A stretch of DNA of 64,000 nt from Klebsormidium nitens (lineage: Eukaryota; Plantae; Klebsormidiophyceae). Under the pieces are notes generated by a model. That model saw only the letters and a list, made by a program, of their open reading frames with translations. It was not told the origin of the DNA and ran no database searches. A program made the position numbers and the translations under genes. The first letter of the stretch is position 1. Each line of letters opens with the position of its first letter. Shown here in pieces: positions 9,773 to 39,755 of this stretch. The stretch spans positions 92,397 to 156,396 of the forward strand of contig DF236996.1 of assembly GCA_000708835.1 (NCBI GenBank), read 5' to 3'.

Positions 9773-10879
9773 ATGAACGCCCCAAAGATCGACCCGGAGC
9801 CCCTCCTGGAATACCTCCAGGACGAGACCAAGAAGACCATCTTTGACTTTGTGCGCTGGGCGACGCACCGCAACACGCGCCGCTACGCGCGCCACGTCAG
9901 CGGCCTGTGGCGCTCAGGGATCATCCGCTCGCTGCGCTCCCCGCTCCTCTTCGTCTTCTTCTCCTCCCTCTCGCTAGTTCTCTACCACACCGCCAAGGAC
10001 CGCGCCTGGATTTCACCGTCCTTTCCTACGCTCTCCCTCTCCAGCACGCAGCCCTTCACGCTTTCGTCATTAGCGCTGTCCCTCTTGCTTGTCTTCCGGA
10101 CCAATGCTTCGTATGCAAGGTTCGACGAGGCGCGGACAATCCTGGGAGCGATTCTGTGCCGCACGCGGCATTTAGCGAGGCAGGGGCTAGCGTGGATCGA
10201 CCCAAAGGATGCTGACCTCATCGCTTTGCTGGAGCGGTGGACGATTGCATTCACTTTTGCGCTGGCGGTGCATCTGAGGCCGGACGGCGACGTCCGGAAG
10301 GAGCTACAGGGTGTCCTTCTGCCGTCCGAATTGGCAGCCCTTGAGGAAGCTGAGCACAAGCCCAGTTTCGTCCTGAGTGTTCTTCAGCACATTCTGCCGC
10401 AGGCGGGGGTGTCGGATTACCTTCAGGGGTGCATGAACGAGAGCCTGGCGCAACTAGAGACGTCGCTCGGGTCGTGCGAGCGGATCTTCAACACCCCCAT
10501 CCCGCTTATGTACACACGTCACACGTCGCGGTTCCTCATGCTCTGGATTGGGATCATTCCGTTCATGATGTGGGAGGCCTGCGGTTTTGCAAGCCTGATC
10601 CTGAGCCCTGCGATCGCGTTCTTCTTGCTGGGGATAGAGGAGATCGGGGTGCAAATAGAGGAGCCGTTCAGTATTCTTCCCATAACGTACATAGCTTCGG
10701 TCGCGGAGCGCAACATTCGGGAGATGGTTAAGAAGAGGGAGCTGACAAGGGGCATTGTTGGCAGGGGCAGAAGGGGAGTTTCTTGGGAAGGGGGTCTAGG
10801 GGGTCCGCTCGATGGGGTCATGAACGGGTGCAATGCTGTCAGTGGACAGCAGAGCGAGGGGCACTTCGAAAGAGCGTAA
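9773..10879 (+). CDS. Bestrophin-like / UPF0187 anion channel (VCCN/YneE type), single exon, 368 aa
   Basis: Uninterrupted ORF with family motifs W..HR...RY..H, LSLLLVFRTNASYARFDEAR, YTRHTSRFL and LLGIEEIGVQIEEPF, plus hydrophobic TM segments. Confidence 0.92.
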   Translation: MNAPKIDPEPLLEYLQDETKKTIFDFVRWATHRNTRRYARHVSGLWRSGIIRSLRSPLLFVFFSSLSLVLYHTAKDRAWISPSFPTLSLSSTQPFTLSSLALSLLLVFRTNASYARFDEARTILGAILCRTRHLARQGLAWIDPKDADLIALLERWTIAFTFALAVHLRPDGDVRKELQGVLLPSELAALEEAEHKPSFVLSVLQHILPQAGVSDYLQGCMNESLAQLETSLGSCERIFNTPIPLMYTRHTSRFLMLWIGIIPFMMWEACGFASLILSPAIAFFLLGIEEIGVQIEEPFSILPITYIASVAERNIREMVKKRELTRGIVGRGRRGVSWEGGLGGPLDGVMNGCNAVSGQQSEGHFERA

Positions 10880-19074: not shown

Positions 19075-22000
19075 ATGGGCGGCGGTCACTGGCCCGGGGT
19101 CAAAGTATGGACAATGTGGATATTCCTGGCAGGTCTTGCTGCAGGTAAACTATCATTTCTTGTTCCATGAGGCCACAGCATTCCGCCACATTAGATCTTG
19201 CATTGGAAATGTTGTCAAGAGAACCAGAAGACTTGGAATAGGTCATCCATCTGGAAGGTTTGACCCGCTGGAGCAACCATATTATTGTATCTGGATTACA
19301 TACAAGTTGACAGTGTTAACAGTTGGAAATTTTTTGGTCAGATTTCCACAAATGCTGATATGAATTGCACAAGGTGAAGACTTGGAAAGTTTTGAAACAT
19401 GTCCATATCTCAAAATGAGCTTTTGTTTGATCAGCAGCCCTGACCATCAAGGTCATCAAAGACTTGGCCACTATTTGTTCAGGTCTCTTCTGAACCTGAG
19501 ATCCACTCAAACGTCCAGATGCTTTAGATGGCGCCAGAAACGAAGATCTCTGGCCTGTATGTTCCCTGCGCCTTTTGCCTCCTTTCAACTATGCTCTAAA
19601 GGGCTCACTCTAAGTTCCTTTGGCAGCAAACCTGTAAGGTTTGTTCATGGATCTGCAATCAGAAGGCTAGCCTCCAAGGTGGATCTTTAGCTCATCGGGC
19701 TCCTTTATGTCCCTTCTTCACCAGATTAAAATGCAAGGCACATCCCGGACTTCTTCAATAAGTACCAACCCCTGTATTATGGAGTCCATCTTTTTCCTCA
19801 GAACCTGTTGAGTGTTGCAACCACAGTCAATAGTCTACACACATCCTGAAACCTGCAATGCTGTACCATACGATCTTGCTTTGGTTCAGCACTACACTCA
19901 GTCACAGCACAGGACTTTACTGGACCCGCGGTTTTCAGCTCAGCAGCTAGTGGGAGAACGCCGCTTTTTGACTTGATAATCCACAGCACCAATAACTGCA
20001 CACAATTTCACCTTCACACCACCTTTTCAGGGTGCAATACTGCCTTCATGGGCCGATATTTGAATGTACTTGGATCACACGTTCCATCAAGCAGGCAATT
20101 TCAGGCCGTCTTGGAGCTGCCACAAATTCCACCTTTGGGCAGACTTTGAAGATTCTCTTGACAATGATGACAACTTCTGTCACGCTTGCAACCAAAGGTT
20201 TTTGCTTGGTTGACACTGCCTGCTTGTCTGTAAGACCAATAGCAAGGGGCTTCCGGCCCCTAGCTGAAGGGGTTGGTTGATGACTTGGTTCCTGTTTAAG
20301 GACCTGTCAAATGCTTTTGCTGTAGTCACTCTTGAACTTCACCCAGCACTGTCTGTCAGTGCAACGCTGTTGTCTGATACACTCATTGCTTGACCCTGGC
20401 TGATAGGTCGAACTCAAGCTCTGAATCGGGAGGCTACTCAGCTTACGCAAAGATCTCTCACTATGGATTCCGGCACAACTCTGTAAGAGAAGTCAGGAGT
20501 ACCACTGCAGCGTTCCCTTTGCTGTGCTTGTAAACTCTGCAAAAAACACCAATTGTATCGAAAGTGACTATTTGCCTCATTGTCAGGGTGTCACTTAAAT
20601 GCTCTTGCTGCACTTGTCCAACTGCCACTTGCATATGCAAGACAGTTACAATAGTTGACAAACTCATATCACCTCTGAACTCGACTGCCCCTTAGTGCAG
20701 GTGTCACGCAAGCAGCCCCTGTGACTGACTGCAACAACCTGGCGGCTGAAATATCGGCAGCAGGGGCGGGAGGAACCGTCGAGATCCAGGGTATCCTCCC
20801 CTGCAGTTCCCCCATAACGATTGGCAGCAGTGTGACGTTGGCCGGAGTCTCTAGCAATGCAGCCAACGACGGATTCGACGGCCAGGCCATGACACAACTC
20901 TTCGTCGTTCAGGGGTCTGGAACGCAGGTTAACTTCAATTTCCTGACACTTACAAACGCGAAGGTGAGGCGCACACTTCTGTATCCACCTTTTTCAAACC
21001 ATTTCAATGGAGGGGCAAGAAGGTGGTGGACGAAGGAGGCTGCTTTTATATTTGCATGTTTGGAAGAGAATGTTACAATGTAGTTCTACTGAATACTACT
21101 TGAGTACCCCAATTTCCCTCTGCCTTGGATGATAAAGCTGGTGTCTTCTTGAAGTGTTAAGGACATTGCTGCCATCTGATGGTCCTTGAAAGCATGGCTT
21201 TCTTTTGACCATGACAAGCGCAACACTGTCATCATCGCACAGTCAGTACTGCTTACAAATGGAGCACATGCACCCATTCCCAGAGAACACCGTTTCCACT
21301 GACAGGGCAGAGCTTCATGAAAGTGCTTGCAGGCGGAGACCTCAGACCTGATTCGCAGGAGGGGAGGGGGTCTCGCACCTGCACAAGCTCTTAGTGTATG
21401 CAACTTACTCACATCACCTTCTTGCCTCGTACAGACCAATGCGCAGGGTGGTGCGGTTTTGGTCAACTCGGCGGCCTCGGCTTCCTTCTCCAACTTTGTC
21501 ATCAGCAACTGCGTTGTGGTAAGTCATCTTGCCGAAATCTTTCTGTGACCTTGCCCAAGAGGGAAGTTGCGTCTTGCTTTGACGTCCACATCGCTCTTCC
21601 TTCGCTTGAAGTGATATTTCAGATTTGCAGCCGTTCCATTCAATACCATAGGTAGGCACAAGGCGCCATGCTGTGTCCACACCATCTAGCATATCCTCAT
21701 TTCTACCCTAGAAAAGAACGACGCTTGAGCGCTTCTTCGGGTTCAAAGTTTCATTTGTCGCCAGTTTTCTTTCATAGCTTCTGTGAAACGGTTTGAAATG
21801 CAGAGCATCCGGAACTCCTTACTCAGCCTTGGAGGATTATGCACTCCTCACTGTGGACAGCCTTGGTCGTGGGCCAATGACCAGGCTGCTGACATGGACA
21901 TCTTTCAGCCAAACAATCTTTGCATCCGTCTGTATTTTGTTACAGAACACTGGTTTTGCTGGAGCGGCCGTGTTCATTGGAGGTTCAGCCTCGTTTTCCG

Positions 22001-25000
22001 ACGGGCTGATCACTGGCAGCAGCTCGGTGAGGAATGCAGCTAGGCACCGCAACTTCAGCAAAGCAGACTACGTCACATCCCTTTCTTGCTTTCTCCAGCG
22101 TTGCATGATCAGAAGATACAGGGAGCAGCCTTCTCTTGGCTTTCTCAACATCTCCACTGTAAGCACCTTGCTCAACGTCCGATTGCAAGTTCAATGGGTT
22201 TCGAATTGCAGGAAGTTCCATTTAGTTGCAGGACGCTGTGGTTTTCAACGTTTGGCTTCTGACAGACCTGTTGGCAAAACAAGATGAGATGCACAACATC
22301 CTCTGCAGGACTATGCTGGGGGTGCCATCTTCGCTGACACAGGCTCCTCACTCAGTCTCGACAATGTCCAGTTTACCAACAACGTGGCTCGCACAGGCGC
22401 AGGAGGGGCTATCTTTTCAAATTCTGGACTGCAGGCGTCCTTTACGTCAGTCACCTTCGATACCAACATGGCGGTGAGGTTTGCTTTCCAACGCTCTCTC
22501 TGCATGTGAACAAGTGCATTGTATCTGTGTTGGGGCTCGAATGGAAGTTGTCCTACTCCAATTCAGATTGTTGAAAGGTCCCATATCTAATTGAAGGTAC
22601 TTGCAACAGATCTTAGATGTTCGTGAGGCTGGATTTACCTACATGTGTCCTTATCCACCTTATCCGCTGGCTGAGATTGAATTGCTGGTAACAGACAGTG
22701 GTCTTAGATTCGGTTTGGAATGCAACGAATTAGACTTCATGGATGCATCTAGTTTCAGAAGAGGCCGCTTCGTAGGACGTTAGATTCGAAGGTTAAGGTC
22801 TTGGCAGGCAGAGATTCTTCGTGTGCTTTACGATGCTAATTTGTCTGAGACGGACTCTTGGTATGGAGGCAGCTGTTTGCGTAGTTGGTCTCCAAATACG
22901 AGGCTTCTACAACCCTGGCATGGTCGCTGAGCAATCGCTCAGTCGTGAAGTGGCTGGTAGCTCTTTTGAGAACGTCAACTTTGTAATGATGAAGTCGTGG
23001 TCCTGCGAAATCTGCATTTCCCGTTATCAGTTGCTGATCAGAAATCTCTGCCTCCAGGCAACCGACGGTGGCTGTGTCTTTCTTGGCGGCTCCATCAAGT
23101 CTACGTTCGCCGGTTGCACCTTCACGAATTGCACCTCAGTAAGCAGATGACTATTCGAGCTTTTCTCATACGTCAGCTTTGTCAATAGCCGGCATACGGC
23201 CGCTGTTAGATTCAAGTTTGGCACCAAATGCGTCGTGTCAGACCTTCGACCCGGGTAAGTGTCAGGAGGTTGCACCAGAGAGTTGTCGGCACTGCCACCA
23301 CTTAGATACCGAAATGCGAACATCACGCTAGAGCTTTCACTGGCAACGATCTGATGGAACTCTACTGTTGGTCAGCCTGCAGGAGCACGAACGTACCCAA
23401 AAAAACTTGCTTACCGCCGCTCCCGTTTTTTTTCTGGTCTTGGGTTGCGGCTCTTTATCTGATGTTGGGCTCGTTGCAAAGAGACAAGCTTTAGCGCTTT
23501 CTCGCGGAGTCTTTTGTGGCAGAATCCTTCCGGCGCGTCAACTTTCCCTAAGAGATCTTCCGTGACTTGTGACGTCAACGTGACCCTGGAGGACCGTGAC
23601 CAGCAGCAATTCTTGCTCTTAATTGATAGCTGTAGCATTAGGCGTACAGCCATTAAATCCTGTTCACTTGTCCGACGAAATTCTGCATCCCTTGCAGACG
23701 AACGGCCGAGGTGGCGCCCTGTTCATGGGAGGTGACAACGCTTTAACGTCCATAATAGACACATCCTTCATGGGAAACCAGGCGGTGAGTTGCTCTCTTA
23801 TGAGACTGAGCAGCGCTGGCCCTCGAGAGGACGCAGTCAGAGGCTATACTTAACCCTTACAAAAGATCAGGTTGTTTTGAGCATGGTCCTGTGAAGCGGA
23901 TTGTTGTTTTGTCTGACCCATACGACTGTCTACACATACGCAAGCTGACTGAGTGACACGAATGATGACGAAGGCGTTTGCTTTCGCTTGCCCCACCGAG
24001 GTGGTGGCCTCAAAAGAATCTGGTGAGAGATGACGTCCTAAATCGACTCGCTTGTGTAAACCCAGCTTGGAAACGGTGGCGCGGTCTTTGTCTCAAGTTC
24101 CACGTCCGTCACGACGCTCACAAACGTCCAATTCACCAACAACAAGGCCACCAGACCTGCTTCCGGTGGCGGGTCTGCCGGAGGCGGCATGCTGGCTGAT
24201 GGTGACGTCAGCATGCAGCAAGTCACAATGACTGGCAACACTGCGGTGAGCACCGTTCTTGCTGGGAGGGAGTCGTGGCCCCGCCAAGCAGAAGGGACGG
24301 ATGGATGGATGGATGTTTGGAGAGACCTGATTGATTGCCTGACTAATACCAGCGGCTTCAGCCTAGATTTTGATAGTTGAGGAAGTTGAGAGTTCGAGAC
24401 GTACTCGAGTCTTTGAAGCGTAGAGGCTCTGAATGCAAACGAGGTTAGCTTGCTCAGCTCCTGGTAGATCTTCAAGTGCGGATGGTGCTTCTGAATGGGC
24501 TGGGTCGCTACTGACACAAATGTTTGTATGTCTTTTGACCAGACGTTAAGTGGAGGCGGTCTGGCGACTCAAGCTGACCGTGTGAGGATCACAATGTCCG
24601 ACATCGAGGGCAACGACGCTACAGTGAGTTGTCATCGCGTTTGTTGCGACTCTTGGCTAGCCTCAAGAAAGAGTAGCCTCGTCTTCCAGATTCCCTCCAA
24701 CGAGTTTAAATTGGATCGACCTGGATTGAACTGAATTGTTGAACTGCAAGATCGTGCGAATCTCTTCAGTCAATCAAAGTGCTGGGGATTGCTTTTTGCT
24801 AAGGAGACTCGTTTGCCTTCGGAGGCAAACGCACGTATATTTTAGATCTCAGCGATGACTTGCGCACACTACAGTTTTCTGGAGGAGGGGTCTTCGTTTT
24901 GAAGGGAAATGTACAGATCGACACAACGAAGTGGCACATCACCGCAAACAACACGGTCACCGGCACCAACGTAAGTGCCACCCAGACTGCCCATATCTCC

Positions 25001-28000
25001 TCGAAGAGCAGGAAGGTCATCTTTTGGATCTTGGGTCCTTTTAAACGAGAGCAACATCTTAGTTGTTCAGGCCAGACTAACGCAAATCAAGGAAGCAATC
25101 TCAGGCATATTTGATATCCAAAAGCCACCTCGATTCGAGCAGACTACTCCATCGTGACTTCCTCGCTTGTGTTTCTTTGGATTCTGTAGCTGGGCTGATC
25201 CTTGACACGTTCCCACTTCGGCTCCTTCCCCTCGTTCTTGCAGGGCGGTAACCCAAATGACGGGTCGAGGGATGTATTTGTCAACGAAGGTGGCTTCGCT
25301 TACTTTTGTGACGAGCTTCCATGGCCCGGGAATACAAACGTGAGCTGTCATCTCCTGGTCCCCTCGTCCAGATCAGTTCGAAGACAAGGTCCCAGGATTC
25401 AAATCAGTTTGATGCGTCAGCGACCCCCCGGAAAAAAACTTGCCTTGACCAGAAACGGTCTGATCAATTTTGAAAGGATTGGCGACACATTTTGTTGAGG
25501 TGACCAGCACAGCAACTTGCCATTTTGACAAGCTGCAATCACATGTGATCTGTGCTCTTGCTGAGACTTTCCTTGCGTCCTTTCTATGCAGCCGCATACT
25601 GTCTCAGGACCATACAGTCTTGGTAAGTTCCTCACGTCCACATCGAGCAATTCTTTCCCCTCTTGACCTGGATGCTGAATTTGAATCTGTAAGCACCCGC
25701 GGTTCAGATAAAGTTGACGGCTTTCTTCTATCTGCAGAACTTCTTTCGTTGGCGTTCTTGGATGCAGCCGGTATACTATGTCGAAATCTCGCCTTCAAGC
25801 CGAGGAAGTGTTTTGGTCATCCTTCAGCTCTCTTCTTTGGGCCCTTTTTCGCGGCCAACCCTGTTCATGAGTCTCTTGTCGTCTTGCAGGTTGTCCCGGT
25901 TACAACAACACCACCCCTATCCCTGCCAACAAAGACTGCGTCAGCTTTTTGACTGCTCTCCAGAACGCGCCCAACGATGGCACTGGCGTAGTGAACTTCA
26001 CAGACGTCATCCGCTTTGACGCGCTCACTTGCGGCACCTTCTCGCTTCCTTTTGTGATCAGCAAATCGGTCACGATTCAGGGGGCGTCTGACAACCCGCT
26101 CTACAACACTCTCGACGCATACAACAACAACGCCCTGTTCAGGGTCACGGGCACCGGAGTTAGGGTCTTTTTCAATCGCGTGCAACTCACGAGAGGAGTG
26201 GTGAGGAGGGTATCCCTTTACATTTTCGGTCTGTTACAGAAAACCTCATAAGGTACCCCGCTTTCTGCTTTCAAGGTTCTAACCCGTCTGTTTTGAGCGA
26301 GATTTGTTTGTTATATCTTCAAGATCCAAGGCAAGGCGTTTGGGTCGCAACCTCGCTCGACCTTCAATATCAAGTACTGCTTTTGCAGTATTTTCGCCTC
26401 GCCCAAAGACCTTTGTTAGTACGAAGTAACGATAGACGGCACTTGAAGGTCGTCTAACCTCAGACTCCTGTGAGCCTGTCCGTCTTGTTGAGCTTCGACT
26501 TCATGTGGCATTGTCCCATGCTTGTGATGCAACGCCCAGCTCTTCCATATAGTCGCTTTCACCACTGGACCAGTGACTTTGAGGCCACCAAGGGGACGGC
26601 TTTAGTGGGGAAGTGTGAGGACATCCTTAAGGCTTGCCAACTCTTTCCTACAGGGAGGAAACGGGCCAGCGATCAGCGTCGAATCAGGGGCTTTCGTACA
26701 GACCAATAACGCCGTCTTCTCGTACCACCAGGTCAGTTCAAGCCCACACATGTGAAGGAAACGAGATCGCAAATCGAAGCTATCCGAAACGAAGCAGTGG
26801 TCCGTGGTTTATGTGGAGATATCATACCTTGTCCTTGTAAAAGATAAAGAGTCCTTGTCAAGGGGGCAGACTTCCGATTGTCCTTGTAAAAGATAAAGAG
26901 TCCTTGTCAAGGGGCAGACTTCCGATTCTTCTGATACAGTGCAGACTTTTCCGAAAACGCTAACATGAGCCGATCAAGGCATTTCAGCAGGACCTTCTGT
27001 AGAAACCTAGAGCCTGATTCTGAAGTTTTGCGTCATATTTGATAGTTGCGCTCCCCTTTTTGAATGATTGCCATCGCCATGTCCTTACAGGCAACCGGTA
27101 ATGGAGGTGCGATCTACCTCGCCCCAGGAACCAGCATCGAAATGTTGTCTGGTACAACTCTCACAAACAACATCGCGGTAAGCAATATCTCAAACAAGAC
27201 AGAAGGTTCCCGTGCCTGTCAAAGTAAGGTGTTAGACATCGCTGCTTCAATTACATCTCCCGTTGTCCAAGATTGAGATCGTCGTTCAGTCTCTTTTGAT
27301 TGCGACTTGCGAAAGCCAACAAACGCCTTTGACTGCCGGATGCAATTCGCTTGAAGCTTGGTCTTGAAGAAGTTTTCTATGCTCTCCAGAAAAAGGTCGC
27401 CGGAGGTGGAGGTGGCAACGGAGGTGCCGTGTATGGTGATGATGGATCGAAGGTCTACTTGTACACTGTTACCATGCAATTCAATAAGGCGGAACAGGTA
27501 AAGGATTAGCTTGGATCGTACCTTCGCCTGCAATTGTCATGAGCTTCCGCTTCAAATTGGGTCTTGCTCATTCAACATGTGTTCTTAGTGCTGCAGTCCA
27601 CATTTCCTTTTGTGGAGCACTCGCTCAAGTGCGGAGTGCTGGAAGCTGTTGTTCTAGGGAGGGAAGCTAGGGCAGCACCGTCTACTTTGAATCCTCTTCC
27701 ACGAGGGTCCCATTGTATACTGTCAACTTGGCCATCGCATCCCATTTTGCTTCTGGCGCATGATCTGCTCTTTCTTTCATGCAGGATGGTGGTTCTCTTT
27801 GGGTCGGAGGCAGATTGGACAGCTTCTTTACCACAATGTCAAACTCGAATGCGGTAAGTCTGAACCGTGATGTGGGTTGCACTAGTTTGATCCCGCGCAC
27901 ACCTAGATAGTACTTCCTGGCGCTTCTCTTGATCAGAGCTCAGTTCACAGAAGTTTGCATATCTCATTGATAATTCTTGAATTGCTGCTTCTCATTGACA

Positions 28001-31000
28001 ATCCCTGAATTTGCAGAACTTTTGCGGACAACACACAACACAACAATTACTTGGACTAATTGGAGCGAGTCTTTCTTCGTTTCAGGTTGAGCCTTTCACG
28101 AAAACCACCCCTTACCTCTGATTAAAGAGTGCAGAATCATTATGGAAAGCCTGTACTTAGAACTTGGTTGCTCCAGTCCGCTACAATTTCAACACTTGAT
28201 GATATTTACGTGCCGGGACCGAACACTCTACTATTCTTGTACAGGGGGGATTGGGGGGTTGCGCTTTTGAGAAGAAATCGTCAACCTCTCTTGATGGCGG
28301 GTTTTATCAGGGAGGGCTTTTCCAAATCTGCAACGCGGTGAGCACCCTCGGCGATAGGAAACCTATTTCAGGGCGAGTCCGTTTGATGGTACCTTCGCCT
28401 TGCTTGGCGACTCACCTTCCTATGCAGAGTTCGTAAAGCAAGTGGCTCTCCTTGCAGATCAAGGCAGTCATTGCTCGTCATGTGAGTGTCGAGATCGTCG
28501 GAGAAGGATTCAGTATCGAAGGAAGGCAGCTACGCGGCTTCGTTGTGCATGATCGCGCAGCTGTTATACTATACGTCAATATTCATGTCACTATCGAACG
28601 GAAAGACTAGAAAGCTGGGTTTCATTAAGGTACCAAATCTTGGACATCTTTGCAGGTACAAGGAGGTGCCATGTACATCCAGGATGCTCAGGTCACTTCC
28701 TTGTTCACCGGTTCCTTCAACAATACAATAAGTGTAAGTATCACAATCGGGTGTCCATGGATGACGTCATCTACGTTCTTGGCTTTGACTTTGACTCAAA
28801 GACAGACCTGGAATCTCCGTTGGTGACTCAAATGGACTTACTGGAAGGCTCCTTCATCAATTGATCTCATTAAGAACGAATGAAACCACTTGACATGTCT
28901 GAAATGTGTTTTGGTACGTGTGTCCTCGACAAAGGCATGGCTCATCACACTCTTCTCACAGCGGTTGAACGTGCGTGCAGGGACCAGACAACTCAAGGAG
29001 CGTTTTCATAACGCCGGGGGGTCTCCTGCGAATCTGCTCGGATCAGTTTGGCTTTAACGTGAGACATTCATCCGGCTTTCTGAGCGAAGCATAGAAGATC
29101 CATTTAAAGTTATAGCGAGCATTTGGAAGCTACTAGTTGCTTCTGGGAATAAGCTTTTACAATATATCTGGATCCGCTAGTTAGGAATCAAGTATTGACT
29201 CGCCTATCACGAACTTTGCCACAGGCTTCATCAATTCGAAGAATCCAGATCCTGGGAAAGGCGCTAAATTGGATGTTCAATCGGACACGAAGCTATGAAC
29301 AAGAGCTTGGCGCTTCAGAATCGGCGTTCGCCGAAGGTAGAGGAGGCCTTTGAGGCAACCCGACAACATACTTTCATAAAGAACATGAGCAAGAGCAAGA
29401 GCAAGAGCTATGCGCAAGCCTGAACAAACACATGCATTCTGCACTTGTCACTTTAGCTAACGGGGTTCCTCGCCTTTTGCAGTTCGCCACAATCGTTGGG
29501 CCCTATGAAACAAGTGAGTCTCCGAAATTTCTCGTGCTTTCCTCATCTTTTGCAAAAGAGGCAACGGGAAGCCTGCTGCCGGATGCAATCGTAACCGAGT
29601 ATGTATGTCTGTTTGCCTGCATCTGCAACCTCGACACGAGCTAGGAGTGACTGGTCCAGAGCTTTGGTGGCCAGATTGCGAATGCTTCGGAACTGGAAAC
29701 CTTGCGTGAATGCAGCCGTTGTTCTAAATTGCTCTCTTGCAAATCCTTTTCGGGACTGCGTCACAACAAACCCTCTCCAGCATTAACTCGCCAAGAACAC
29801 CGCCTCAAACACTGTCGTTCCTCTTGTAACAAGCGTTTCTAAGCACCCGTCCCACACACATTTTCTCTCTCCAGTCTGCCCGCTGAACATTCCCGACGTC
29901 GCGAGCACGTGCCCGGAGCTCCTCATGAGAATCGCGAACCCCGTCGTATACTCGTATGATGGCGGTAACAGGGATCCTGCGGTGCCAACCATTCGTTTCA
30001 CGGGCTTCATCACCTTGTCACCCGAGTCGTGCCCAGCTGGGACCACCTTCCCCATCGTGATTGACAGCGATGTTGCTGGGCTGCGGTTCCTCGGAGATGA
30101 CGCTAACCCACAGTTCAATCAGATCACGGGCAACGGCTCAAACGCATTGTTCAAAACGACCAACCCAAACGGGATCCGGTTTGAGCGCCTGTGGCTGACA
30201 AGGGCCTTGGTGAGACTTCATTGCAGAGCCCCGTTTTCACCTGACTGTGGCAACATCTACACGATAAACACTGGTTTGAAGTCGTTGCAACTTGTGAAGC
30301 ATCTGACTTTGGAAGCAATCGCATAACAAAAGTCTTGGGAAGTTTCTGAATTAAGGGAGCGTTACTTCCTAGCGCCGTAATTCAATGTTGTCGCCTTTGA
30401 CGTGACTATATTGCCTCGTGCAAGGGCACCTGTTTCAAAGCCGAAGTGTCGTCTCCGAGTGTTCTCCACTCCGTGTGCCGCTGTGAAAGTAGAGAGCAAA
30501 GTCTGTCTTCTTTGTTCCTTTCACCTCGTGTGTTCTTGTGAAGTGACTGTGGTTGCCGTCGTCTATTTCTCTCAGGTAAATCTGCACTTCGGCTACAGAA
30601 CAAGGACTTTCGTTCACGGCTACTTCTTGCAAACTCGTAACAAGGATCAGAGTGATCATAGGTCAAGAATACAGGCATTTCTTCCGACAGCAGCTCATTC
30701 TGAAAGCCTCACCCGGGAACGGGTGCACTTCAAACGATTGCTTTTTACTCCCAAGACAAACTGGGCTAAGACTCTTCGCTTCTCTTGCAGAGAGCTTCTG
30801 GCAATGGGGCGTGCCTGGAGCATACTGCTGGGCCGCTGACTATCCTGAACGTCAACTTTCAGGACTGCATTGCTGTGAGTTATCTATTGCACCCATGTGA
30901 TTCTGAATCTGAACCATCTGCAGCCACGAATCTGCTTTGCACTCACTTGGTCTGTCATAAGGCGGTTTTCGTCATGCTCAGCCCTTAGTCGAGGCTGGCA

Positions 31001-34000
31001 ACAAGGGCAAGCGATTGTAATTTGCATAACAAGGTCGGCGTAACTTCTGGGTGGGGCAAACGGTCCGCTTGTATTACCTTTCTTGACTCTTATATGCGAC
31101 TTGAAAAGAAGGGGTTACGAACACCTCCTGATATCTGCAGACAAACGGAAACGGAGGGGCTGTCTACCTGGGCCCCGGCACCAGCGCTTCTACGACGAGC
31201 TTTGCAGCTCTGAGAAATTATGGGGTAAGCTTGTCGAGGATGCCCCTTGCGACGTTAGATACGCAACCACTGGAGATCCATCTACTTAGGATCAACCTCA
31301 AGTCGATAGCCATGCGCTCAAGCCCCAAACAGCTCTGAATGCAGGAAGAGGTTGGCATCCTCGTCTCCCCCTCGGAAGGCTGTAATTCTAAGCGGGTAGT
31401 TGGATATGGCAGCTTTTCAGCATCCTTACCGGCCCTCACATTTGGCAACTGCGGTTTCCTTGCGTCCTCCTGTTAAGTCTCTTGAAAGATATCAAGTTCT
31501 GAAAGCCAACTCAAGATGGTCTGTTCTTTCGTTTTCTGCAGCAATTCGGAGGCGCGATGTATACGGAATCGAACGTGCCTGTGATCGCCAGCGGGTCTGG
31601 GTTCTTTCAGGGAGGCGCTTACCAGGTAAGCTAACTTGTAGCTGGCAAAGGAAGTACTCTCTTTTTGCCACAAGTCCTTCTGCCACGTGTCCTTCTGCAC
31701 TTTTGAGCTGGAGCTGACAATACCTTGAATATCAGGAAAGACTCCTATCTAGTAGGCCGAGGTACTTCGCAGGCACGTTTTCCCGCTTAAATTCTCGGTG
31801 ACGCTTCTTACATTTGGGCAGAGGCTTAGCCTGTGGTCTCGCTTATACAAACGACCGCGAGCGGGTGTGCAATCTCGAAGCTGCATTCCGGGTAGGATAG
31901 GGTGGAAATAGCAATTCCGTGAAACCCTGGGGTCAATGCTTGCAGAATGGCGGTGGAATCTACGTGCAAGGTCCCTTCAGCGCCAGCCGGACGTCCATCA
32001 CTAGCAACATGGCGGTAAGGTTCCGGCCAACTCTTCGAACTCTTCACTATCCTGTGCATCCAGTCCCTGATGTTTTTAGCGTTCTTTGACCTCGCTAGGT
32101 GAGGCATGCAGCGAACTCTGAATATCGTATTGAGGAAGATTGGCATGCTTGTTTGTAGGCGCATTTCTGGTACCCGTAATATAAGACTTATTAACAGAAC
32201 TGGAGAGTCCGTGTACTTTACTTGGACAGCCTTGCGAGTTTGGGTCTTTATCAAGATACCACGGAGTATGAAGCGTTCAAATCACCATTGCGTACAACCT
32301 TTTGAAAGCTTCAATAGCTAGCTTAGACTAAGCTTGAGGTTCCTTAAAGTCCTCCCGCCTAGTCATCCCGCCCGCTCACTCCGATCGCGCAAGTCATAAA
32401 AAGCTTAGGCCTGCTTTTCATAGCTCTGTGTCGCTTGCAGGATGCTTTCGGTGCTGGGCTCTACATGACCGGCCCTGCCAACGTCCAGTGGAACACTGGG
32501 TCCTTCGACAGCAACACGGCAGGGGTGAGCTCCCTCACATTCGCGCCTGTTTTGAAACTTCAGATTCAAAGTTTGAACCCACCCCGACTTCGTGGTTCTC
32601 CTGTGCTTTGGACCAAGTCAGCATTTGGACCAAGTCAGCAGAAGTTGCGACTCGCTTCGTCCCTTTCATTTCACTGCCTTTATGAGTTTTGGGCGAGCTT
32701 GCTTGTCTGACACTCTGTTGGTGCGGCCCTCTTGTTGCCTTTTGCCAGCTTCGAGCATACAAGGCAGCCTAGGAATCTCGAAGTGAAGTGGGGATACCGA
32801 GCAGGGCTCCAGTCCTGTGCTAACCCAACGTAACCCACCTGTTGCTGCAGACCGAAGGAGGGGGTGCCTTCTTCGGTGCTAGCACTATCTTCAAGGGGGT
32901 CTTCTTTACCCAGGCCAACAACCAGCGCAGAGGCGTAAGTGACGTTCATTATCGCTGTCTTTCAATCAGCATGGTTCCTCTTCCGCAAGAGCATGGGCAA
33001 AACTGAGCAACACAGGTTCAAGGATGTCGTGCACTCACGTGCCTTCGGCCTAGCTTACAGAGTATCCTTTCTGAAGATTGGTCATGTCACGAGCGTAATG
33101 GCGTCATTCCTGCCGCTCGTGAAGGACCCTTGACAACAGAAGTGGAGAGCCGGGAGCTTTGGAATTGTATACTGCCTTTTGTTGGCCGACACCAGCCGCC
33201 CTCTCGAACAGAACTCTTGTATACGTTCACTTTTTACCTCACGCGTCGAGTCTCTTTTGTCTACCCCCAAAACCAGTTCACTGGACAGGCTAACGGAACA
33301 GTCCTCGGCCGCCAATGGTGTCAAATCCAGCGAACGTGATCTGGCCCCCAGAACCATATCTTATGAAAGCGGCACTCCTTTTTATGGTCGGGTCGCCACC
33401 CGTCGAACTCAGAAGCGTCTAACAGTGGGAATTTTTTGGAATCTGCAGAAATCGAGGACTCCCCCGCTGGGGGGTAGCATCTCCGACGCAGGCTATCTGG
33501 ACACTGGCGCCATGGTCACGCTCTGTCAGTACACGGGCCAAAACAACGACCAAGGGAATAATGGCACGGTAAGCTTCTTGAAGCCTGGACGATGTCCCAA
33601 AGCGCGCTGTGTTCTGGTGGAGCTTCGAGATATATTGGCCAGTCGAAGTTCAAAGCTGCCTTTCAAAAGCATGCTTTCGGTTGTGTTTTGGAACTGTACT
33701 TGAGAGGAGTTCCCTTGTGAGATCAGAGATCGGTGACTACTGTCGCTTGGTGTGTTTCGAGTACGAGTTGCTCATTGAGGGCGCGTTCTGCAGAATTAAA
33801 TGCAAGAAAACAAACAAAAAGGCAATCGAACGCGGCAGCTCCTCGCCAATCTGAGTGATCCAAAATTTTTGACGAGCTCTTCCCTTTAGCTGGTATCCTT
33901 GAGTCATCGAGACAGCCCAGAACACTTGATCGTCCGTACTTTTTAAAAGTTCGAGCCTTCAACCCTCATCCCGATTAGACAATCAGGCCACATTGCCAAG

Positions 34001-37000
34001 ATCTATTGCACCGTGTCGCCTGCGGTAACCCTTTGCTTGGTGTCGACCCTTACTGCAAACAAATGCAATCAGCCTGTTGACCTAAACCTTACCGAGCTGC
34101 TTCCAATAGTTCTTCCGCTTCGCTTGGCCCTCACTTACTTCCGCCCCCAAGTGCTCTGCCGCCGCTTCTCAAGCCTTCGCCGTTCCTTTGCAGACCCCGT
34201 ACCAGTACTTCGCTGGGCCGGGTAAAGATGGCCTAGTTATCTTTGATAACCAAGGTAAGCCTTCCGTCTTCTGGACCTCCCTCTCCGACATCCAGACCCA
34301 TCTTTTAAGCGCCTCCGTTTCGAGTAGAATCCTAATCGACCTCGCAAACCCGCCCCTCATGCCTAAAATGGACCCGTCTCAACTCCCGTTGCCAGGGCTT
34401 TGTACTACTACGTAGTAGTCGCTGCCAGCTCCTCAAAGGACAATCTGCATGCCATCATTTCCTTTCCACGCATCTTTGGGTGTATGTCGCGCAGACTTGT
34501 ACGCTGATGCGTGCGCACTGAGTAAGCGCGAAAGCTCCTCTTTGTAACTGCTTGCATGATTCGAGAACGAATTTCAAACCCCCTACTAACACGTTTGCCC
34601 TGCGCTGTGCTGCGCCTTGGCGTTCCCCCTCCTGCCAGACTGCACAAGTAAGTCGCAACCTTCTTTTTTCAGCTGGGACTGCTCATAGATATTCCCAAAA
34701 AGCAGACAAGATGCCTTTGCAGCGAGTGGTTTCAAGTGCTGAGCACCCGTTGCTAGTATAGGCACGTCGACGTTTTCGGTGATCGAAAGATTGCTAGCCC
34801 TGCCTCGGAAGCAGCAACGCGCAATCCGCATCCATCCCTGGCTTGCATGTGATCTTGTTCGGATCCGCGTTTTGCCTTTTGACTTTTCAAACAGAAAGCA
34901 CGCCAACGGCACTGAATCTGCTCTTGCCCTCTGCAGATAGAGGACCACCGCCGCCAGCAAGCCCCCCGCCCTCCCCTCCTTCAGCCAACCCCCCGCCCCT
35001 TGCAAATCAGCCCNNNNNNNNNNNNNNNNNNNNNNNNNNNNNNNNNNNNNNNNNNNNNNNNNNNNNNNNNNNNNNNNNNNNNNNNNNNNNNNNNNNNNNN
35101 NNNNNNNNNNNNNNNNNNNNNNNNNNNNNNNNNNNNNNNNNNNNNNNNNNNNNNNNNNNNNNNNNNNNNNNNNNNNNNNNNNNNNNNNNNNNNNNNNNNN
35201 NNNNNNNNNNNNNNNNNNNNNNNNNNNNNNNNNNNNNNNNNNNNNNNNNNNNNNNNNNNNNNNNNNNNNNNNNNNNNNNNNNNNNNNNNNNNNNNNNNNN
35301 NNNNNNNNNNNNNNNNNNNNNNNNNNNNNNNNNNNNNNNNNNNNNNNNNNNNNNNNNNNNNNNNNNNNNNNNNNNNNNNNNNNNNNNNNNNNNNNNNNNN
35401 NNNNNNNNNNNNNNNNNNNNNNNNNNNNNNNNNNNNNNNNNNNNNNNNNNNNNNNNNNNNNNNNNNNNNNNNNNNNNNNNNNNNNNNNNNNNNNNNNNNN
35501 NNNNNNNNNNNNNNNNNNNNNNNNNNNNNNNNNNNNNNNNNNNNNNNNNNNNNNNNNNNNNNNNNNNNNNNNNNNNNNNNNNNNNNNNNNNNNNNNNNNN
35601 NNNNNNNNNNNNNNNNNNNNNNNNNNNNNNNNNNNNNNNNNNNNNNNNNNNNNCTCTCCTCCCGGTTCCGCCCAGCCGCCCCCTCTTTCCGTCGACTCTC
35701 CTCCCGGTTCCGCCCAGCCGCCCCCTCTTTCCGTCAACTCGCCCCCGGGGTCCGTCGCCTCGCCCCCTCCAGACGTCAACTCTCCCCCGGTGGCAACCAG
35801 CGCTAATCCACCCCCTGTCTCAATCACTCCCTCTCCCCCGGGCGTGATCTCCTCTCCGCCGTCAGACGTTCCTCCCCCTCCTTTCCCGACGAACGTCGCG
35901 TGCGACCCGGCGTCCCCCTTCAAGTTCACCTGCTACAGCAGTGGGGGGGACAGTTCCATCTGCTGCGACACCCCCTGCCCCGAAACTCCGGGCCCGGTCG
36001 CGTACTGTTCGGGCCAGCCGTTCCCCACGCTCCCCCCCCGGTCGCACAGGGCCCCGCACCCCCCTTCCCGACGAACGTTGCCTGCGACCTGGACTCGCCC
36101 AACAAGTACACCTGCTACAGCAGCACCGGCGATTCGTCGATCTGCTGCAACACCCCTTGCCCCGCAATCCCGACCGCGGTTCCGTACTGCGAGGGTCAAC
36201 CGATCCCGACGGCTCGTCGGCCCCGCCCCCCCCCCCGTGGCGTGCTCACCCTACTCGCCCCTGCCCTACACGTGTTACGACAGCATTGGCTCCAGCTTCA
36301 TCTGCTGCGGCGAACCCTGTCCCGGAACCCCAGGGCCTATTCCCGCCTGCACCGGGCAGCCAATCACCGCCATTCCCCCGCCGGGGCTGGCCTCCCCGCC
36401 CCCCCCAACGCCGTGCGACCCCGCGTCGAATCGCTCCAACACGTGCTACAACTCCGGGGGGAGCACCTTCGTGTGCTGCGACTCGCCGTGCCCCGCAACG
36501 CCGTCGGACGTTCCGTTCTGCTCCGCGCAGCCCATCGTGGCACTCTCGGCGCTTTCCGCGCTGAGCGCGCCGGCCCCGGCCCCACTCGCGGTCACCGTGT
36601 CGTTTCCCCCCCCAGCGGAGGTGCTCGCGAGCCCCCCACCTCCGCAGCCCATCGTGGCACTCTCGGCGCTTTCCGCACTGAGCGCGCCGGCCCCGCCCCG
36701 CTCGCGGTCACCTTGTCGTCCCCCCCGCCAGCGGAGGTACTCGCGAGCCCGCCCCCGGTGGAAACGACGGCTGCCCCCGCGCCGGCTCCGGACACTCCAA
36801 CGCCGACGCCAACAGCGACCGTCGCTAGTTCTCCCCCCCCGGCGGAAACGACGGCGGCCCCCGCGCCGGCTCCAGATACTCCGACGCCGACGCCAACCGC
36901 GACCGTTGCGAGTTCTCCGCCCCCGTTGGAAACTATCGGGGCGCCCGCGCCCGCGCCGGAAACCCCAACCCCAACCCCTACGCCGACGCCGACTCCAACC

Positions 37001-37171
37001 GCGACCATCCCAAGCTCACCGCCCCCGGTGGAAACAACGGCGGCGCCCGTGAACCCGCCCCCCCCTCCTCCGAACAACCCACCTCCTCCTCTTGAAACTC
37101 CTACCCCTACCCCTACCCCTACTGCCACGGCGAGCGCCGTCGCCCCCACAGCAGAGGGGCCCGCGCCTTAA
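19075..37171 (+). CDS. Giant secreted chimera: three PMP-like (GGA/FxxN) beta-helix domains + Pro-rich stalk + four 6-Cys modules + Ala/Pro/Thr-rich tail (~1,800 aa, 31 exons)
   Basis: Phase-consistent GT-AG exons: 19075-19144, 20701-20963, 21435-21518, 21946-22026, 22309-22473, 23058-23138, 23698-23784, 24066-24245, 24543-24623, 24875-24970, 25244-25339, 25592-25622, 25890-26200, 26654-26731, 27091-27177, 27390-27497, 27785-27853, 28245-28337, 28656-28733, 28981-29058, 29483-29513, 29875-30209, 30791-30874, 31141-31224, 31542-31625, 31946-32014, 32441-32524, 32851-32934, 33449-33568, 34194-34221, 34937-37171. Signal-like MGGGHWPGVKVWTMWIFLAGLAAG; repeats such as GGAIFADTGSSLSLDNVQFTNNVA and GNGGAIYLAPG...TLTNNIA. 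The last exon crosses the N gap, has frameshifts in C-runs and ends AEGPAP*. Confidence 0.8.
26829..26925. repeat. Tandem duplication of 49/48 bp in an intron
   Basis: ttgtccttgtaaaagataaagagtccttgtcaagg(g)ggcagacttccga occurs twice, differing by one G. Confidence 0.9.
35014..35653. other. Assembly gap (640 N) within the Pro-rich coding exon
   Basis: Run of N. The right flank is a 42-bp coding repeat (SPPGSAQPPPLSV[D/N]), a plausible cause of collapse. Confidence 0.98.
35654..37130 (+). repeat. Coding tandem repeats of the stalk and tail
   Basis: 42-bp units at 35654-35737; four ~44-aa Cys modules at 35895-36530; a 117-bp duplication (starts 36526 and 36643, PIVALSALSALSAPAP); about four (V/A)ETT(A)APAPAP(D/E)TPTPTPTAT(V/I)xSSPPP units at 36758-37130. 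Confidence 0.85.
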
Positions 37172-39755
37172 ACACGCTGTTTTCGCGGCGCCAATAATAT
37201 TGCAGGTGAGGCGTGACGGAATTCGACCTTAGGCTGAACGCTACAGTACGAGACCCTGTTGTTTGCGTCCACAGCTCTTTGCAGGGCCAACAAGAATCTG
37301 CGTGGAGACTGCTCAATCAACCTACAACCTAGTGGCCAGCGTTTGCAAGCATAAGCCGCGAATTGTGGGTGAAGCTCCTTGGCGCTTATGAATCTTCTTG
37401 CAACAAACACCCTGTTAGCAGTATACCCGACTCAAGACGAGAAGAGTCACGGTATTCAAAGGGAAGAGCCTCTGAATCGCAGTATCAGGTGCAGGTATAA
37501 ATTGCCGGATTTTTGCTTGTGGCCGGCAGCATCGTACAGATTGGCTGCTGCTGTTCTTGTTGGCCTTCTGAACTGAGTTTGAATCTCGCAGGGTGGACAA
37601 ATACGAGACGGGAGTGTGATCAAGTAACTTAAGGTGGAACAGAGGAGTTGCTCCAGCGTGACGGCTTCTCGTTTTGGAGTGGAACTAGAGTAGGGAGGAT
37701 TCTAGAGGAAACAGCGGATGTCCTTCTGATTATGATTTGTTTGCCTGGTGATGAAGGCTGTTTAACTTAGAATTCAAAGACCAGCATAAGGGTGGTTTGA
37801 GAGGCCTGAAAAGCTTGCTCGAAGATTGTCTTGAAAGAAGTTTAGATTCTGGCCTTGTGCTTACTTTTCGGGTAAGACACTGAGTCACGTTTGTCAAGTC
37901 GTAGTTCTTAGCGGCTGCCAGTGTCGTTGGAGGTCTGAACAAGGCCCTGGGAAAGTCGAGCCTTCAAGTCTGAACGGTGTGTTAGGCACAAACCTCGCTA
38001 GGAAAGTTAAAGAGGGTCGTCACGTCGCAACCACTTTGGCACACTCGCGTAGACTTCTTCTAACTATGTCAAGGCCAGCTTTTAGCTAGTGACGCCAGTG
38101 ATTCACGCTGTGACGCGCTTTCCATGGCTAGCAAGCTTTTAACTTCGATGGACAATTAGTGCCATTCCTCATAATTTTGTGGCGCCCAATTGTATGAGAA
38201 CCATGCAATCGTTGTCGCGGGCGATTGAGTTTCTTATTCTACATAAGGTTTTGCGTGGCACTGCATCGAAAGCCCGCCTGACATGCCAAGTAATCAGTGA
38301 AGTGACTCTCTTACCCGCTGAGCGTCAGTGTGCACCTTATTAGAAATCAGTATACGGTATGCTATTGCAATTAAGGCCATACGTACCAACGTACGTTCAT
38401 TTGCTAGTGATATCACATGAAAACTTTGGCAGCAAGCTGCCGGCCGCAGATACGACGGTGCGCTGAGCTAGATACTAACCGATCGACTGCTCCACGCAAC
38501 TAATCATTGAATAAAACCGACTACAATTATATTACGTACACGCGTGCATGGCCCACACATGGCTTGATCGATTATTTATGGACTTACCTACACATGCAGT
38601 TGCTGTTGTGCGCGGCCTGTACGTTTCATCATATGATAGGGATATAATAAGACATCATGCATTGACCCGGCGCGGCGCGTGCGCCTAGCTAGCCAGCATG
38701 CCATGAAATCATTTGCCAATCGATATCTGCCAGACTGATAAGATAGATAATGATTCTATCAGACGCGGCCTAAACTATGTTTGCAATTGAATGCGTAGTA
38801 ACGCGCGCGGCGTCAGGCTTTAGACGATTCACCCGGTCATTGCAGCAGAGGCGGCTCTATGGTCTTGAACCAGAGCGCAAACTTAATTATGGGCCAAGCA
38901 TGATGCATGTACAATTCAATCCATCCACCGACAATGTGAATGTTTCACATTTTACGTTGATCAACATGGCATGCAATTGGGTGATGAACTTCGCACGCCT
39001 CACATGCAGTGCATTCAAAAATTTGAACGTATCCGGAATACGCTTCCGCAAGACGATCGATGTGCAAGTCTAGCGAAGCGCTTTAAGTGTGGGCCCCACG
39101 CATGACAACGGCTCGATCAACAACGACACAGACTTCCTTCAGTCCGGTCGGGATGTGAATTGATCCATATGGAGTTGGAGGGGCATTATACCTTACTACG
39201 CTAGCAAGTACAGTGGAAAAGCAAGCCGTCGCTTTCATACTTTCGAAGAGGTAAAAGCAAGCTCGGTCGCAGAAATGCTCCGGTCTTCCAACTGGCTAGA
39301 AACGAGATTATGCTCCAACATGGGAGAACACTTTCGCTATAATGCGCGAGTCGAGTGATCAAGGGAGCGGGAGATATCTAAAATAGATCCGTCTTTACAC
39401 AGATGCTAATCATACCAGTTTGGAACGGCTATCTAAAGCACAAGGCTGAAGCGGAAGGTCGTTCTGCTCTGCCCACTCTTAGATCGAAAGCTAAGATTCC
39501 CGTCCTTCAGCTTACATCTGGATATATTCGTTTGTGCTTCTGGTCGGATCTGTTTTGGAAAATTGGGATTACGGATGACCTTGCATACCAATCTGTATGA
39601 TAGATTTCGAATTTCCGCTGACATGAAGCCATCTGTATGTACATTGGGGTGACTCCCCAAGACCTTCGAGCCCGCGTTCCTTTGTAGTACACACATGCTG
39701 ACTGTCGTCGCAAAACGTTGCCGTTTGTTGCAAGTCGTTGGATCGGCTCCTAAGT

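Follow-up and report, generated by a model that had tools for sequence, protein, structure and literature searches.

The stretch of DNA analyzed here, 64,000 nucleotides (nt) of Klebsormidium nitens contig DF236996.1 (from here on, the window), contains on its plus strand a gene at positions 19075 to 37171 that encodes a predicted secreted protein with three tandem β-helix units followed by a Pro-rich stalk with four Cys modules. The window as a whole is intron-rich, eukaryotic, and about 50% GC. The gene corresponds to KFL_000470130 of K. nitens NIES-2285 (GAQ80139.1; UniProt A0A1Y1HSI1; P0001 in our searches), which is placed on a 284.9-kb scaffold, is labelled "hypothetical protein," and was named kfl00047_0130 in the older v1.0 gene models. 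GAQ80139.1 (1501 aa) aligns letter for letter to 19075 to 37624 in 34 exons and has the same start codon as the original prediction, which described the gene as encoding a secreted chimera of repeats of the polymorphic membrane protein (PMP) type and a hydroxyproline-rich glycoprotein (HRGP). Under its v1.0 name, the gene appears in S4 Table of Liu et al. 2016 (PMC4769139), where four K. flaccidum genes, this one included, are classed as "Chimeric EXT" (extensin); its entry gives SP3/SP4/SP5/YXY counts of 5/0/0/3, "Yes" for a signal peptide, and "No" for a glycosylphosphatidylinositol (GPI) anchor. The sequence is printed in S1 Fig of the same paper, and its head domain is left unnamed. Literature searches for the gene identifiers, for PMP repeats in Klebsormidium, and for a β-helix/extensin chimera in green algae yielded no paper. 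The PMP-type secreted HRGP chimera fits the data, but the accompanying claim of an undescribed architecture has to be narrowed, as the protein was previously classified among the chimeric extensins. The present analysis identifies a triple PMP-type β-helix head on this catalogued protein, together with an apparently orphan Cys module.

Exon 1 (19075 to 19146; all features are on the plus strand unless noted) contains the start codon and encodes a signal peptide of 24 residues with a hydrophobic core (Kyte-Doolittle 15-residue maximum, 1.59). It exactly matches residues 1 to 24 of GAQ80139.1, and this match, as well as the entry in S4 Table, supports the signal peptide originally proposed. After an intron of 1.56 kb, the coding sequence continues in three β-helix units with a common plan, i.e., an N-cap exon (87 to 111 codons), six to eight coil exons (23 to 60 codons), a C-cap exon, and an 11-codon linker with a GPY-like motif. 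Unit 1 (20703 to 25624), which was delineated based on the exon map, splice sites, and a PF02415 match, has 11 exons: the N-cap (20703 to 20963), coil exons at 21435 to 21518, 21946 to 22026, 22309 to 22473 (two coils), 23058 to 23138, 23698 to 23784, 24066 to 24245 (two coils), 24543 to 24623, and 24875 to 24970, the C-cap (25244 to 25339), and the linker (25592 to 25624). Unit 2 (25892 to 29515; nine exons), for which a model of the N-cap and orthologous fragments are available in addition to the exon map and splice sites, comprises the N-cap (25892 to 26200), coil exons at 26654 to 26731, 27091 to 27177, 27390 to 27497, 27785 to 27853, 28245 to 28340, and 28659 to 28733, the C-cap (28981 to 29058), and the linker (29483 to 29515). 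Unit 3 (29877 to 34254; nine exons), delineated by the exon map, splice sites, and unit-to-unit BLASTP, comprises the N-cap (29877 to 30209), coil exons at 30791 to 30874, 31141 to 31224, 31542 to 31625, 31946 to 32014, 32441 to 32524, and 32851 to 32934, the C-cap (33449 to 33568), and a linker exon that starts at 34194 and has two alternative phase-1 donors.

Each unit has 7 to 10 coils, usually with one coil per exon; two exons have two coils each. Introns of the head start with GT[AG]AG donors, end with CAG acceptors that are rich in pyrimidines, and are nearly all in phase 0. We found no overlooked coil exons in the long head introns. Throughout 20703 to 34254, the introns always separate a rung ending in xxN-x-A from the GGA of the following rung. 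One-coil exons separated by phase-0 introns are the textbook pattern of growth by exon duplication. The three units are mutually homologous (approximately 30% identity; E-values of 6e-14 to 3e-7 in unit-to-unit BLASTP and of 5e-9 and 5e-6 at the window level); because they are only about 30% identical, the triplication must be old.

In the head of GAQ80139.1, GGA[ILV] occurs 8 times versus 0.38 ± 0.63 times in shuffled sequences, while the relaxed motif GG-x-hydrophobic occurs 22 times versus 2.8 times and is spaced mostly by 25 to 31 residues (~27). Using Pfam, we detected PF02415 on the two-coil exon at 22288 to 22506 (21.3 bits versus a cutoff of 20.6); the exon at 24060 to 24377 scored 18.4 bits and thus stayed below this cutoff. 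Single coil exons gave no useful match in Pfam, and a profile of the coil exons gave none in PDB. Single-coil exons fail to match PF02415 because the 19-residue Pfam unit, which runs from FxxN to GGA, straddles the intron positions. With the whole protein, TIGR01376 scored 9.5 versus a cutoff of 15, and the PDB sequence search returned nothing significant. We identified 144 sequence relatives of the head (best E-value, 8e-36), of which most have PF02415 and/or PF13229; among them are proteins from Bryopsis and Ostreobium, both green algae, and from Methanobrevibacter. Based on this homology, the head belongs to the wider PMP/β-helix group. Among the 120 listed head relatives outside the K. nitens genome, none has the Pro-rich stalk or the Cys module. 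We also considered that the protein could be a chlamydial Pmp autotransporter and rejected this identity, because the Pmp middle domain (PF07548) and the autotransporter barrel (PF03797) are missing. PF07548 gave only an E-value of 0.13 (12.7 bits) on one exon and no match in the whole-protein Pfam scan; PF03797 was not found in the whole-protein scan, and the C terminus is instead Pro-rich with Cys modules.

A HMMER search with the unit-2 N-cap exon (25871 to 26248) returned three proteins only, i.e., GAQ80139.1 and two short fragments from Logan contigs, P0002 and P0003, suggesting that this N-cap is lineage-specific by sequence. P0002 and P0003 (contigs of 2484 and 1062 nt, respectively) are genomic open reading frame (ORF) fragments that are 75 to 79% identical to the unit-2 N-cap exon and, where this exon ends, likewise pass into sequence resembling an intron. 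They are orthologues from at least two related organisms. An AlphaFold2 model was generated for this one exon from an alignment of the two orthologous fragments and two paralogous exons, and it had a mean predicted local distance difference test (pLDDT) score of 84.4 and a predicted template modeling (pTM) score of 0.79. In a VIA-align search, which is independent of Foldseek, nearly all of the top 50 matches to this model were right-handed parallel β-helices. The best match was 5nxk_A (Z, 6.5; root mean square deviation, 2.1 over 78 residues), the binding region of a Lactobacillus reuteri serine-rich repeat protein (SRRP) adhesin, with 14% identity to the N-cap. Foldseek gave no significant E-value with the model, and its weak list consisted mostly of β-helix lyases. 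Together with the repeat pattern, the model supports that the heads are short, separately capped right-handed β-helices with PMP-type rungs.

Head and stalk are joined at the linker exon that starts at 34194. The two phase-1 donors of this exon are located at 34221 (followed by GTAAAG; used in the original prediction) and 34254 (followed by GTAAGC; used in the annotation). Downstream of these, a candidate 9-nt micro-exon (34640 to 34648), ACTGCACAA, is flanked by good splice signals (ccag before and gtaagt after it) and is included in both public gene models, i.e., its residues DCT(N) are present in GAQ80139.1 and in the v1.0 model. It is frame-neutral, so that the downstream frame is the same whether it is included or skipped. 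The first Pro-rich stalk exon (34937 to 35013) begins with AT after a strong acceptor, ctcttgccctctgcag, is open into an assembly gap, and encodes 25 residues with 52% Pro and one SPPP. All combinations of donor, micro-exon, and acceptor at this join keep the frame. Accordingly, the junction originally suggested, in which G at 34221 and AT at 34937 form an Asp codon, is frame-compatible and uses the strong acceptor, and it is not the sole solution. The gap (35014 to 35653) consists of 640 N, which is an estimated length. Both of its flanks encode Pro-rich peptides of the SPP/SPPP/NPPP type on the plus strand, and it probably lies inside a repetitive Pro-rich exon.

The stalk continues after the gap with a Pro-rich stretch in frame 2 (35654 to 35900) that has seven SPP and one SPPP, 42-nt and 21-nt repeats, and a content of Pro, Ala, Ser, and Thr (PAST) of 67%. 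This stretch is followed by Cys module 1 (35901 to 36008; frame 2), a C8 homopolymer (36032 to 36039), Cys module 2 (36083 to 36190; frame 1), a C11 homopolymer (36226 to 36236), Cys module 3 (36243 to 36350; frame 2), Cys module 4 (36414 to 36521; frame 2), a tandem 117/116-nt duplication (36526 to 36758), the second copy of which is without one G, and a tail with SPPP, AP, and TP motifs in frame 1 (36692 to 37171). The tail ends at a TAA stop codon at 37169 to 37171, the same end as in the v1.0 model. Thus, the Pro-rich segments, the four Cys modules, and the TP/AP tail of the original prediction are all present. The tail has 159 residues with 81% PAST, five SPPP, 29 [AT]P dipeptides, and 84-nt repeats, and it lacks Tyr, Lys, and Arg. 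Read in their own frames, the pieces of the stalk together have nine SPPP, many SPP, and 66 to 81% PAST; outside the Cys modules, they have no Tyr and a single Lys or Arg, at the start of the first piece. The three YXY that Liu et al. 2016 counted in kfl00047_0130 fall in the head and not in the stalk. The features by which these authors recognized chimeric extensins, i.e., at least two SPPP in a P/A/V/S/G/T-rich region, a non-HRGP domain, and a signal peptide, are all found here. The PAST content and [AT]P dipeptides of the tail may, in addition, resemble the glycomodules of arabinogalactan proteins (AGPs), which are characterized by ≥50% PAST with clustered AP/TP/SP and often by a GPI signal; no GPI signal is present here. 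In agreement with the original prediction, we detected no transmembrane (TM) segment or GPI-like hydrophobic end, with Kyte-Doolittle 19-residue means of at most 1.54 in the stalk and 0.65 in the tail; the maximum of 1.54 is that of a Pro-interrupted segment, IVALSALSALSA, which occurs twice.

Each of the four Cys modules has 36 residues, and the six Cys residues have identical spacing (C-x9-C-x9-CC-x3-C-x10-C). The module had no match in Pfam at an E-value of ≤10 and only a chance match in PDB by profile (E-value, 0.05); two word searches (proteins of 166 to 528 aa and of 825 to 2627 aa) returned only the protein itself, and neither a pattern scan of the JGI metagenomes nor the ESM Atlas gave a match. 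In the searches made, it therefore appears to be an orphan that is unlike known small disulfide-rich domains such as knottin, hevein, EGF, and others. We note that upstream of the gene, the minus strand at 13853 to 13978 has a Cys-rich stretch with CC pairs. Farther upstream, an intron-free ORF of 368 codons (9773 to 10879; plus strand) matches Bacterial/Fungal Bestrophin (PF25539; E-value, 2.6e-70).

The original prediction joined all parts in a single reading frame. On the assembly as given, this claim fails: frame 2 contains the SPP-rich stretch and modules 1, 3, and 4, frame 1 contains module 2 and the tail, and the gap is unbridged. The spacings from module to module are 182 (2 mod 3), 160 (1 mod 3), and 171 nt, and a single frame over the stalk would need three 1-nt corrections. 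The first two frame switches are located at the C8 and the C11 run, respectively; of the window's 22 homopolymers of ≥7 bases, 8 are found in this 1.1-kb part of the stalk. At the third break (approximately 36690 to 36700), the second tandem copy lacks one G (CCCCGGCCCC versus CCCCGCCCC), and the same peptide shifts from frame 2 to frame 1. To identify the frames under selection, we compared substitution patterns. Among the nine codon differences between the two best tail repeats, eight are synonymous and one is non-synonymous in frame 1, as opposed to 0/9 and 1/8 in the other frames. For module 2 compared with module 1, the ratio of synonymous to non-synonymous differences is 9/11 in its own frame and 3/16 and 6/14 in the others; in its own frame, module 2 also retains the six Cys residues, their spacing, and the TCY/ICC/PCP core. 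Based on these substitution patterns, the frames of the original prediction are the selected frames, and its stop codon and tail frame are better than those of the current GenBank model. Short introns were rejected as the cause of the frame switches, as modules 1 and 2 have a single GT..AG between them, which is only 9 nt long. We also rejected a 116-nt GT..AG "intron" that equals one tandem copy; it would restore the tail frame, but its signals are weak and a mis-assembled duplicate explains the frame equally well. Deleting one 116-nt copy (within 36526 to 36758) would align the tail frame with that of module 4. The tandem duplicate may itself be an assembly artefact rather than the site of a 1-nt error.

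At the 3' end (35655 to 37624), the two public gene models diverge and have different subsets of the Cys modules in frame. GAQ80139.1 keeps frame 2 throughout the stalk, reads module 2 as an Arg-rich stretch, and then places introns in the tail. The v1.0 model of kfl00047_0130 (1438 aa) switches to frame 1 within module 1, misses the frame of modules 3 and 4, and stops at 37171; it is the only one of the two to reach the selected stop codon. Neither model has a correct 3' end.

Our preferred explanation, which we consider reasonably probable, is that the locus contains one intron-rich gene for a secreted protein with a signal peptide, three β-helix heads, and a Pro-rich/Cys-module stalk, that the frame breaks are assembly errors, and that the protein has a wall-binding role. 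Several observations weigh against it. Strict FxxN, which the original prediction named beside GGA as a hallmark of the three domains, is not enriched in the head (6 observed versus 5.9 expected), and the claim holds for the three homologous units and the enriched GGA; in place of FxxN, [FLMI]xxN recurs in a regular position ~17 residues after each GGA. Scans of the whole protein against Pfam and NCBIfam gave nothing significant, the structural Z scores are modest (≤6.5), and the β-helix fold is common to many polysaccharide lyases and hydrolases. Modeling, as suggested with the original prediction, gave a β-helix for the N-cap exon, but the AlphaFold2 model of the Cys module (pLDDT, 56.7) was unusable. 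The flanks of the gap share no overlap, and the gap hides a stretch of the stalk. Lastly, the third frame break is away from a long homopolymer, and the clustering of three breaks in about 700 nt could alternatively reflect decay of the 3' end.

If the breaks were real and the stalk were decaying, the product would be close to the GenBank model, with modules 1, 3, and 4, an Arg-rich stretch for module 2, and an Arg-rich end near 37049. A protein would still be made, as frame 2 is open from 34941 to 37049, and the third break is the loss of a G from a GG pair and not a classic homopolymer error. Opposed to this, eight of the nine differences between the tail repeats are silent in frame 1 only, every Cys of module 2 is kept in its own frame, and the spacings between modules 1 and 3 add up to a multiple of 3, in line with two length miscalls in opposite directions. 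454 chemistry miscalls long homopolymers. The genome was assembled with Newbler from 454 GS FLX and Illumina reads (PMC4052687), and the first two breaks are at C8 and C11 runs that adjoin the gap in this assembly. Because the selected frames are conserved and the assembly is of the 454/Newbler type, sequencing errors next to the gap are the most likely cause of the three breaks, and we regard genuine decay as improbable. The gap also bears on whether the locus contains two genes, one for a head-only secreted protein that ends soon after 34254 and a separate HRGP/Cys-module gene that starts near or in the gap, with the public joins as annotation artefacts. The gap is located exactly at the join and could hide a start for the part after 35654; the GenBank model crosses the join via the 9-nt micro-exon and the v1.0 model via a GC donor inside the Pro-rich exon; and read-through from 34254 meets a stop after about 50 codons, making a head-only product possible. 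However, both public models join head to stalk, every donor/acceptor combination preserves the frame, and the Pro-rich exon at 34937 needs an upstream exon, as it has a strong acceptor and no in-frame ATG or signal peptide upstream; a scan of 34254 to 34937 revealed neither an in-frame ATG nor a signal-peptide exon of a separate stalk gene. Moreover, a secreted HRGP requires a signal peptide, and the only one seen is that at 19075. The genomic sequence and the public models thus favor one gene from 19075 to 37171 that would be continuous across the gap, and two genes are unlikely.

The β-helix units could also be enzymes, i.e., a polysaccharide lyase, hydrolase, epimerase, or esterase tethered to the wall by the stalk, rather than binding heads, and structural matches to the N-cap model include PL6 and other alginate lyases, pectate lyases, pectin methylesterase, and the AlgE4 epimerase. 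Neither the whole protein nor the exons matched an enzyme family in Pfam or NCBIfam, and for polysaccharide lyases, GH28, and pectin methylesterases no Pfam family was found at an E-value of ≤1. By sequence, the heads are related to surface proteins of the PMP or "outer membrane repeat" type, the best structural match (5nxk) is the binding region of an adhesin, and the regular GGA coils would leave little space for the loops of an active-site cleft. An enzymatic function is thus quite improbable, and binding heads remain our preferred reading. Overall, the original observation was largely right and its interpretation reasonable, with the single frame and the undescribed architecture as the exceptions. 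The term adhesin-like is inferred from the fold and the type of repeat and describes a putative role.

In the one-gene explanation, the protein would have ~1,600 to 1,850 residues once the gap is filled. It would be secreted, and the signal peptide would be followed by three tandem, separately capped right-handed β-helix units with PMP-type coils, in each of which GGA-hydrophobic would be followed ~17 residues on by [FLMI]xxN with a period of ~27 residues. The stalk would consist of SPP/SPPP segments, four six-Cys modules, and the SPPP/AP/TP tail and would end without a membrane or GPI anchor. Walls of K. flaccidum contain Hyp-Araf4 (hydroxyproline carrying four arabinofuranose residues) as shown by mass spectrometry (PMC5371791, Fig. 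8), and this alga is therefore capable of extensin-type arabinosylation. The stalk prolines would be hydroxylated and O-glycosylated, with arabinosides on SPPP and possibly arabinogalactan on the clustered AP/TP, and the glycosylated stalk would form a stiff rod that lies within the wall or extends across it. The Cys modules, knotted by disulfides, could serve as rigid spacers or cross-link points, and the three non-catalytic heads could present long, flat binding faces for a wall polysaccharide, a neighboring cell, or the substrate. This wall-binding reading is based on the fold, the repeat type, the adhesin roles of PMP-type proteins (PMC10715098; bioRxiv 10.1101/454884), and the analogy to SRRPs.

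The gene offers wall biologists a specific candidate for a protein that binds the wall or mediates adhesion in a terrestrial alga that forms filaments and crusts. To our knowledge, classical extensins are absent from green algae, and one of only four catalogued extensin-type proteins of this early-diverging streptophyte has three PMP-type β-helix heads. Both public 3' ends being wrong, the locus has to be resequenced before expression or knockout of the gene.

Among known systems, chlamydial Pmps (PF02415; PMC10715098, PMC11166332) resemble the predicted heads in having GGA(I/L/V) and a downstream xxN once per rung, and their heads are surface exposed and function as adhesins. They differ in that the gene described here is eukaryotic and intron-rich, encodes neither a Pmp middle domain nor an autotransporter barrel, has three short, separately capped helices instead of one long passenger, and is not enriched in strict FxxN. 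The best sequence relatives of the head are Methanobrevibacter adhesin-like proteins, bacterial "outer membrane repeat proteins," and Trichomonas vaginalis Pmp proteins, and PMP-type helices are surface or adherence modules in all three domains of life (bioRxiv 10.1101/454884; PMC10715098). While the PMP-repeat relatives outside Chlamydia are anchored by TM, dockerin, Ig-like, or barrel domains, the protein described here has the Pro-rich stalk and the Cys module.

SRRPs follow the same design as proposed here, in that a β-solenoid head for binding is borne by a long stalk of low complexity that is heavily O-glycosylated and located in the cell wall. The L. reuteri protein, whose binding region is the best structural match of the N-cap (5nxk; Z, 6.5), differs in being bacterial, with a Ser-rich stalk, an LPXTG anchor, and a single head, and it has no sequence similarity to the protein described here (14% identity). 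Closer to hand, inspection by eye of kfl00031_0230, another K. flaccidum "chimeric EXT" (PMC4769139, S1 Fig), suggests a head of the GGA/FxxN type on an SP3-5 stalk, as described here; by the same inspection, it has an EGF-like Cys region, a TM segment, and a PERK-like kinase, in contrast to the four six-Cys modules and the lack of an anchor in our protein. Possibly, although we regard this as rather doubtful, our gene represents the secreted form, without an anchor, in a family of the Klebsormidium lineage that has a bacterial-type PMP β-helix head on a glycosylated Pro rod and in which others, such as kfl00031_0230, are receptor kinases. If so, the free triple-head protein and the receptors would recognize the same wall or environmental ligand, and they would represent an early streptophyte system for wall sensing and adhesion that has no land-plant counterpart and uses an orphan six-Cys spacer domain. 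Compared with chimeric extensins and HRGPs in general (LRX, PERK, formin-EXT, and "other chimeric EXT"; PMC4769139), the protein is alike in its signal peptide, SPPP motifs, PAST-rich rod, and non-HRGP globular domain; it is unlike them in that the globular part is a triple PMP-type β-helix, the stalk has the orphan six-Cys module and no Tyr cross-link motifs, and the tail mixes extensin-like SPPP with AGP-like AP/TP.

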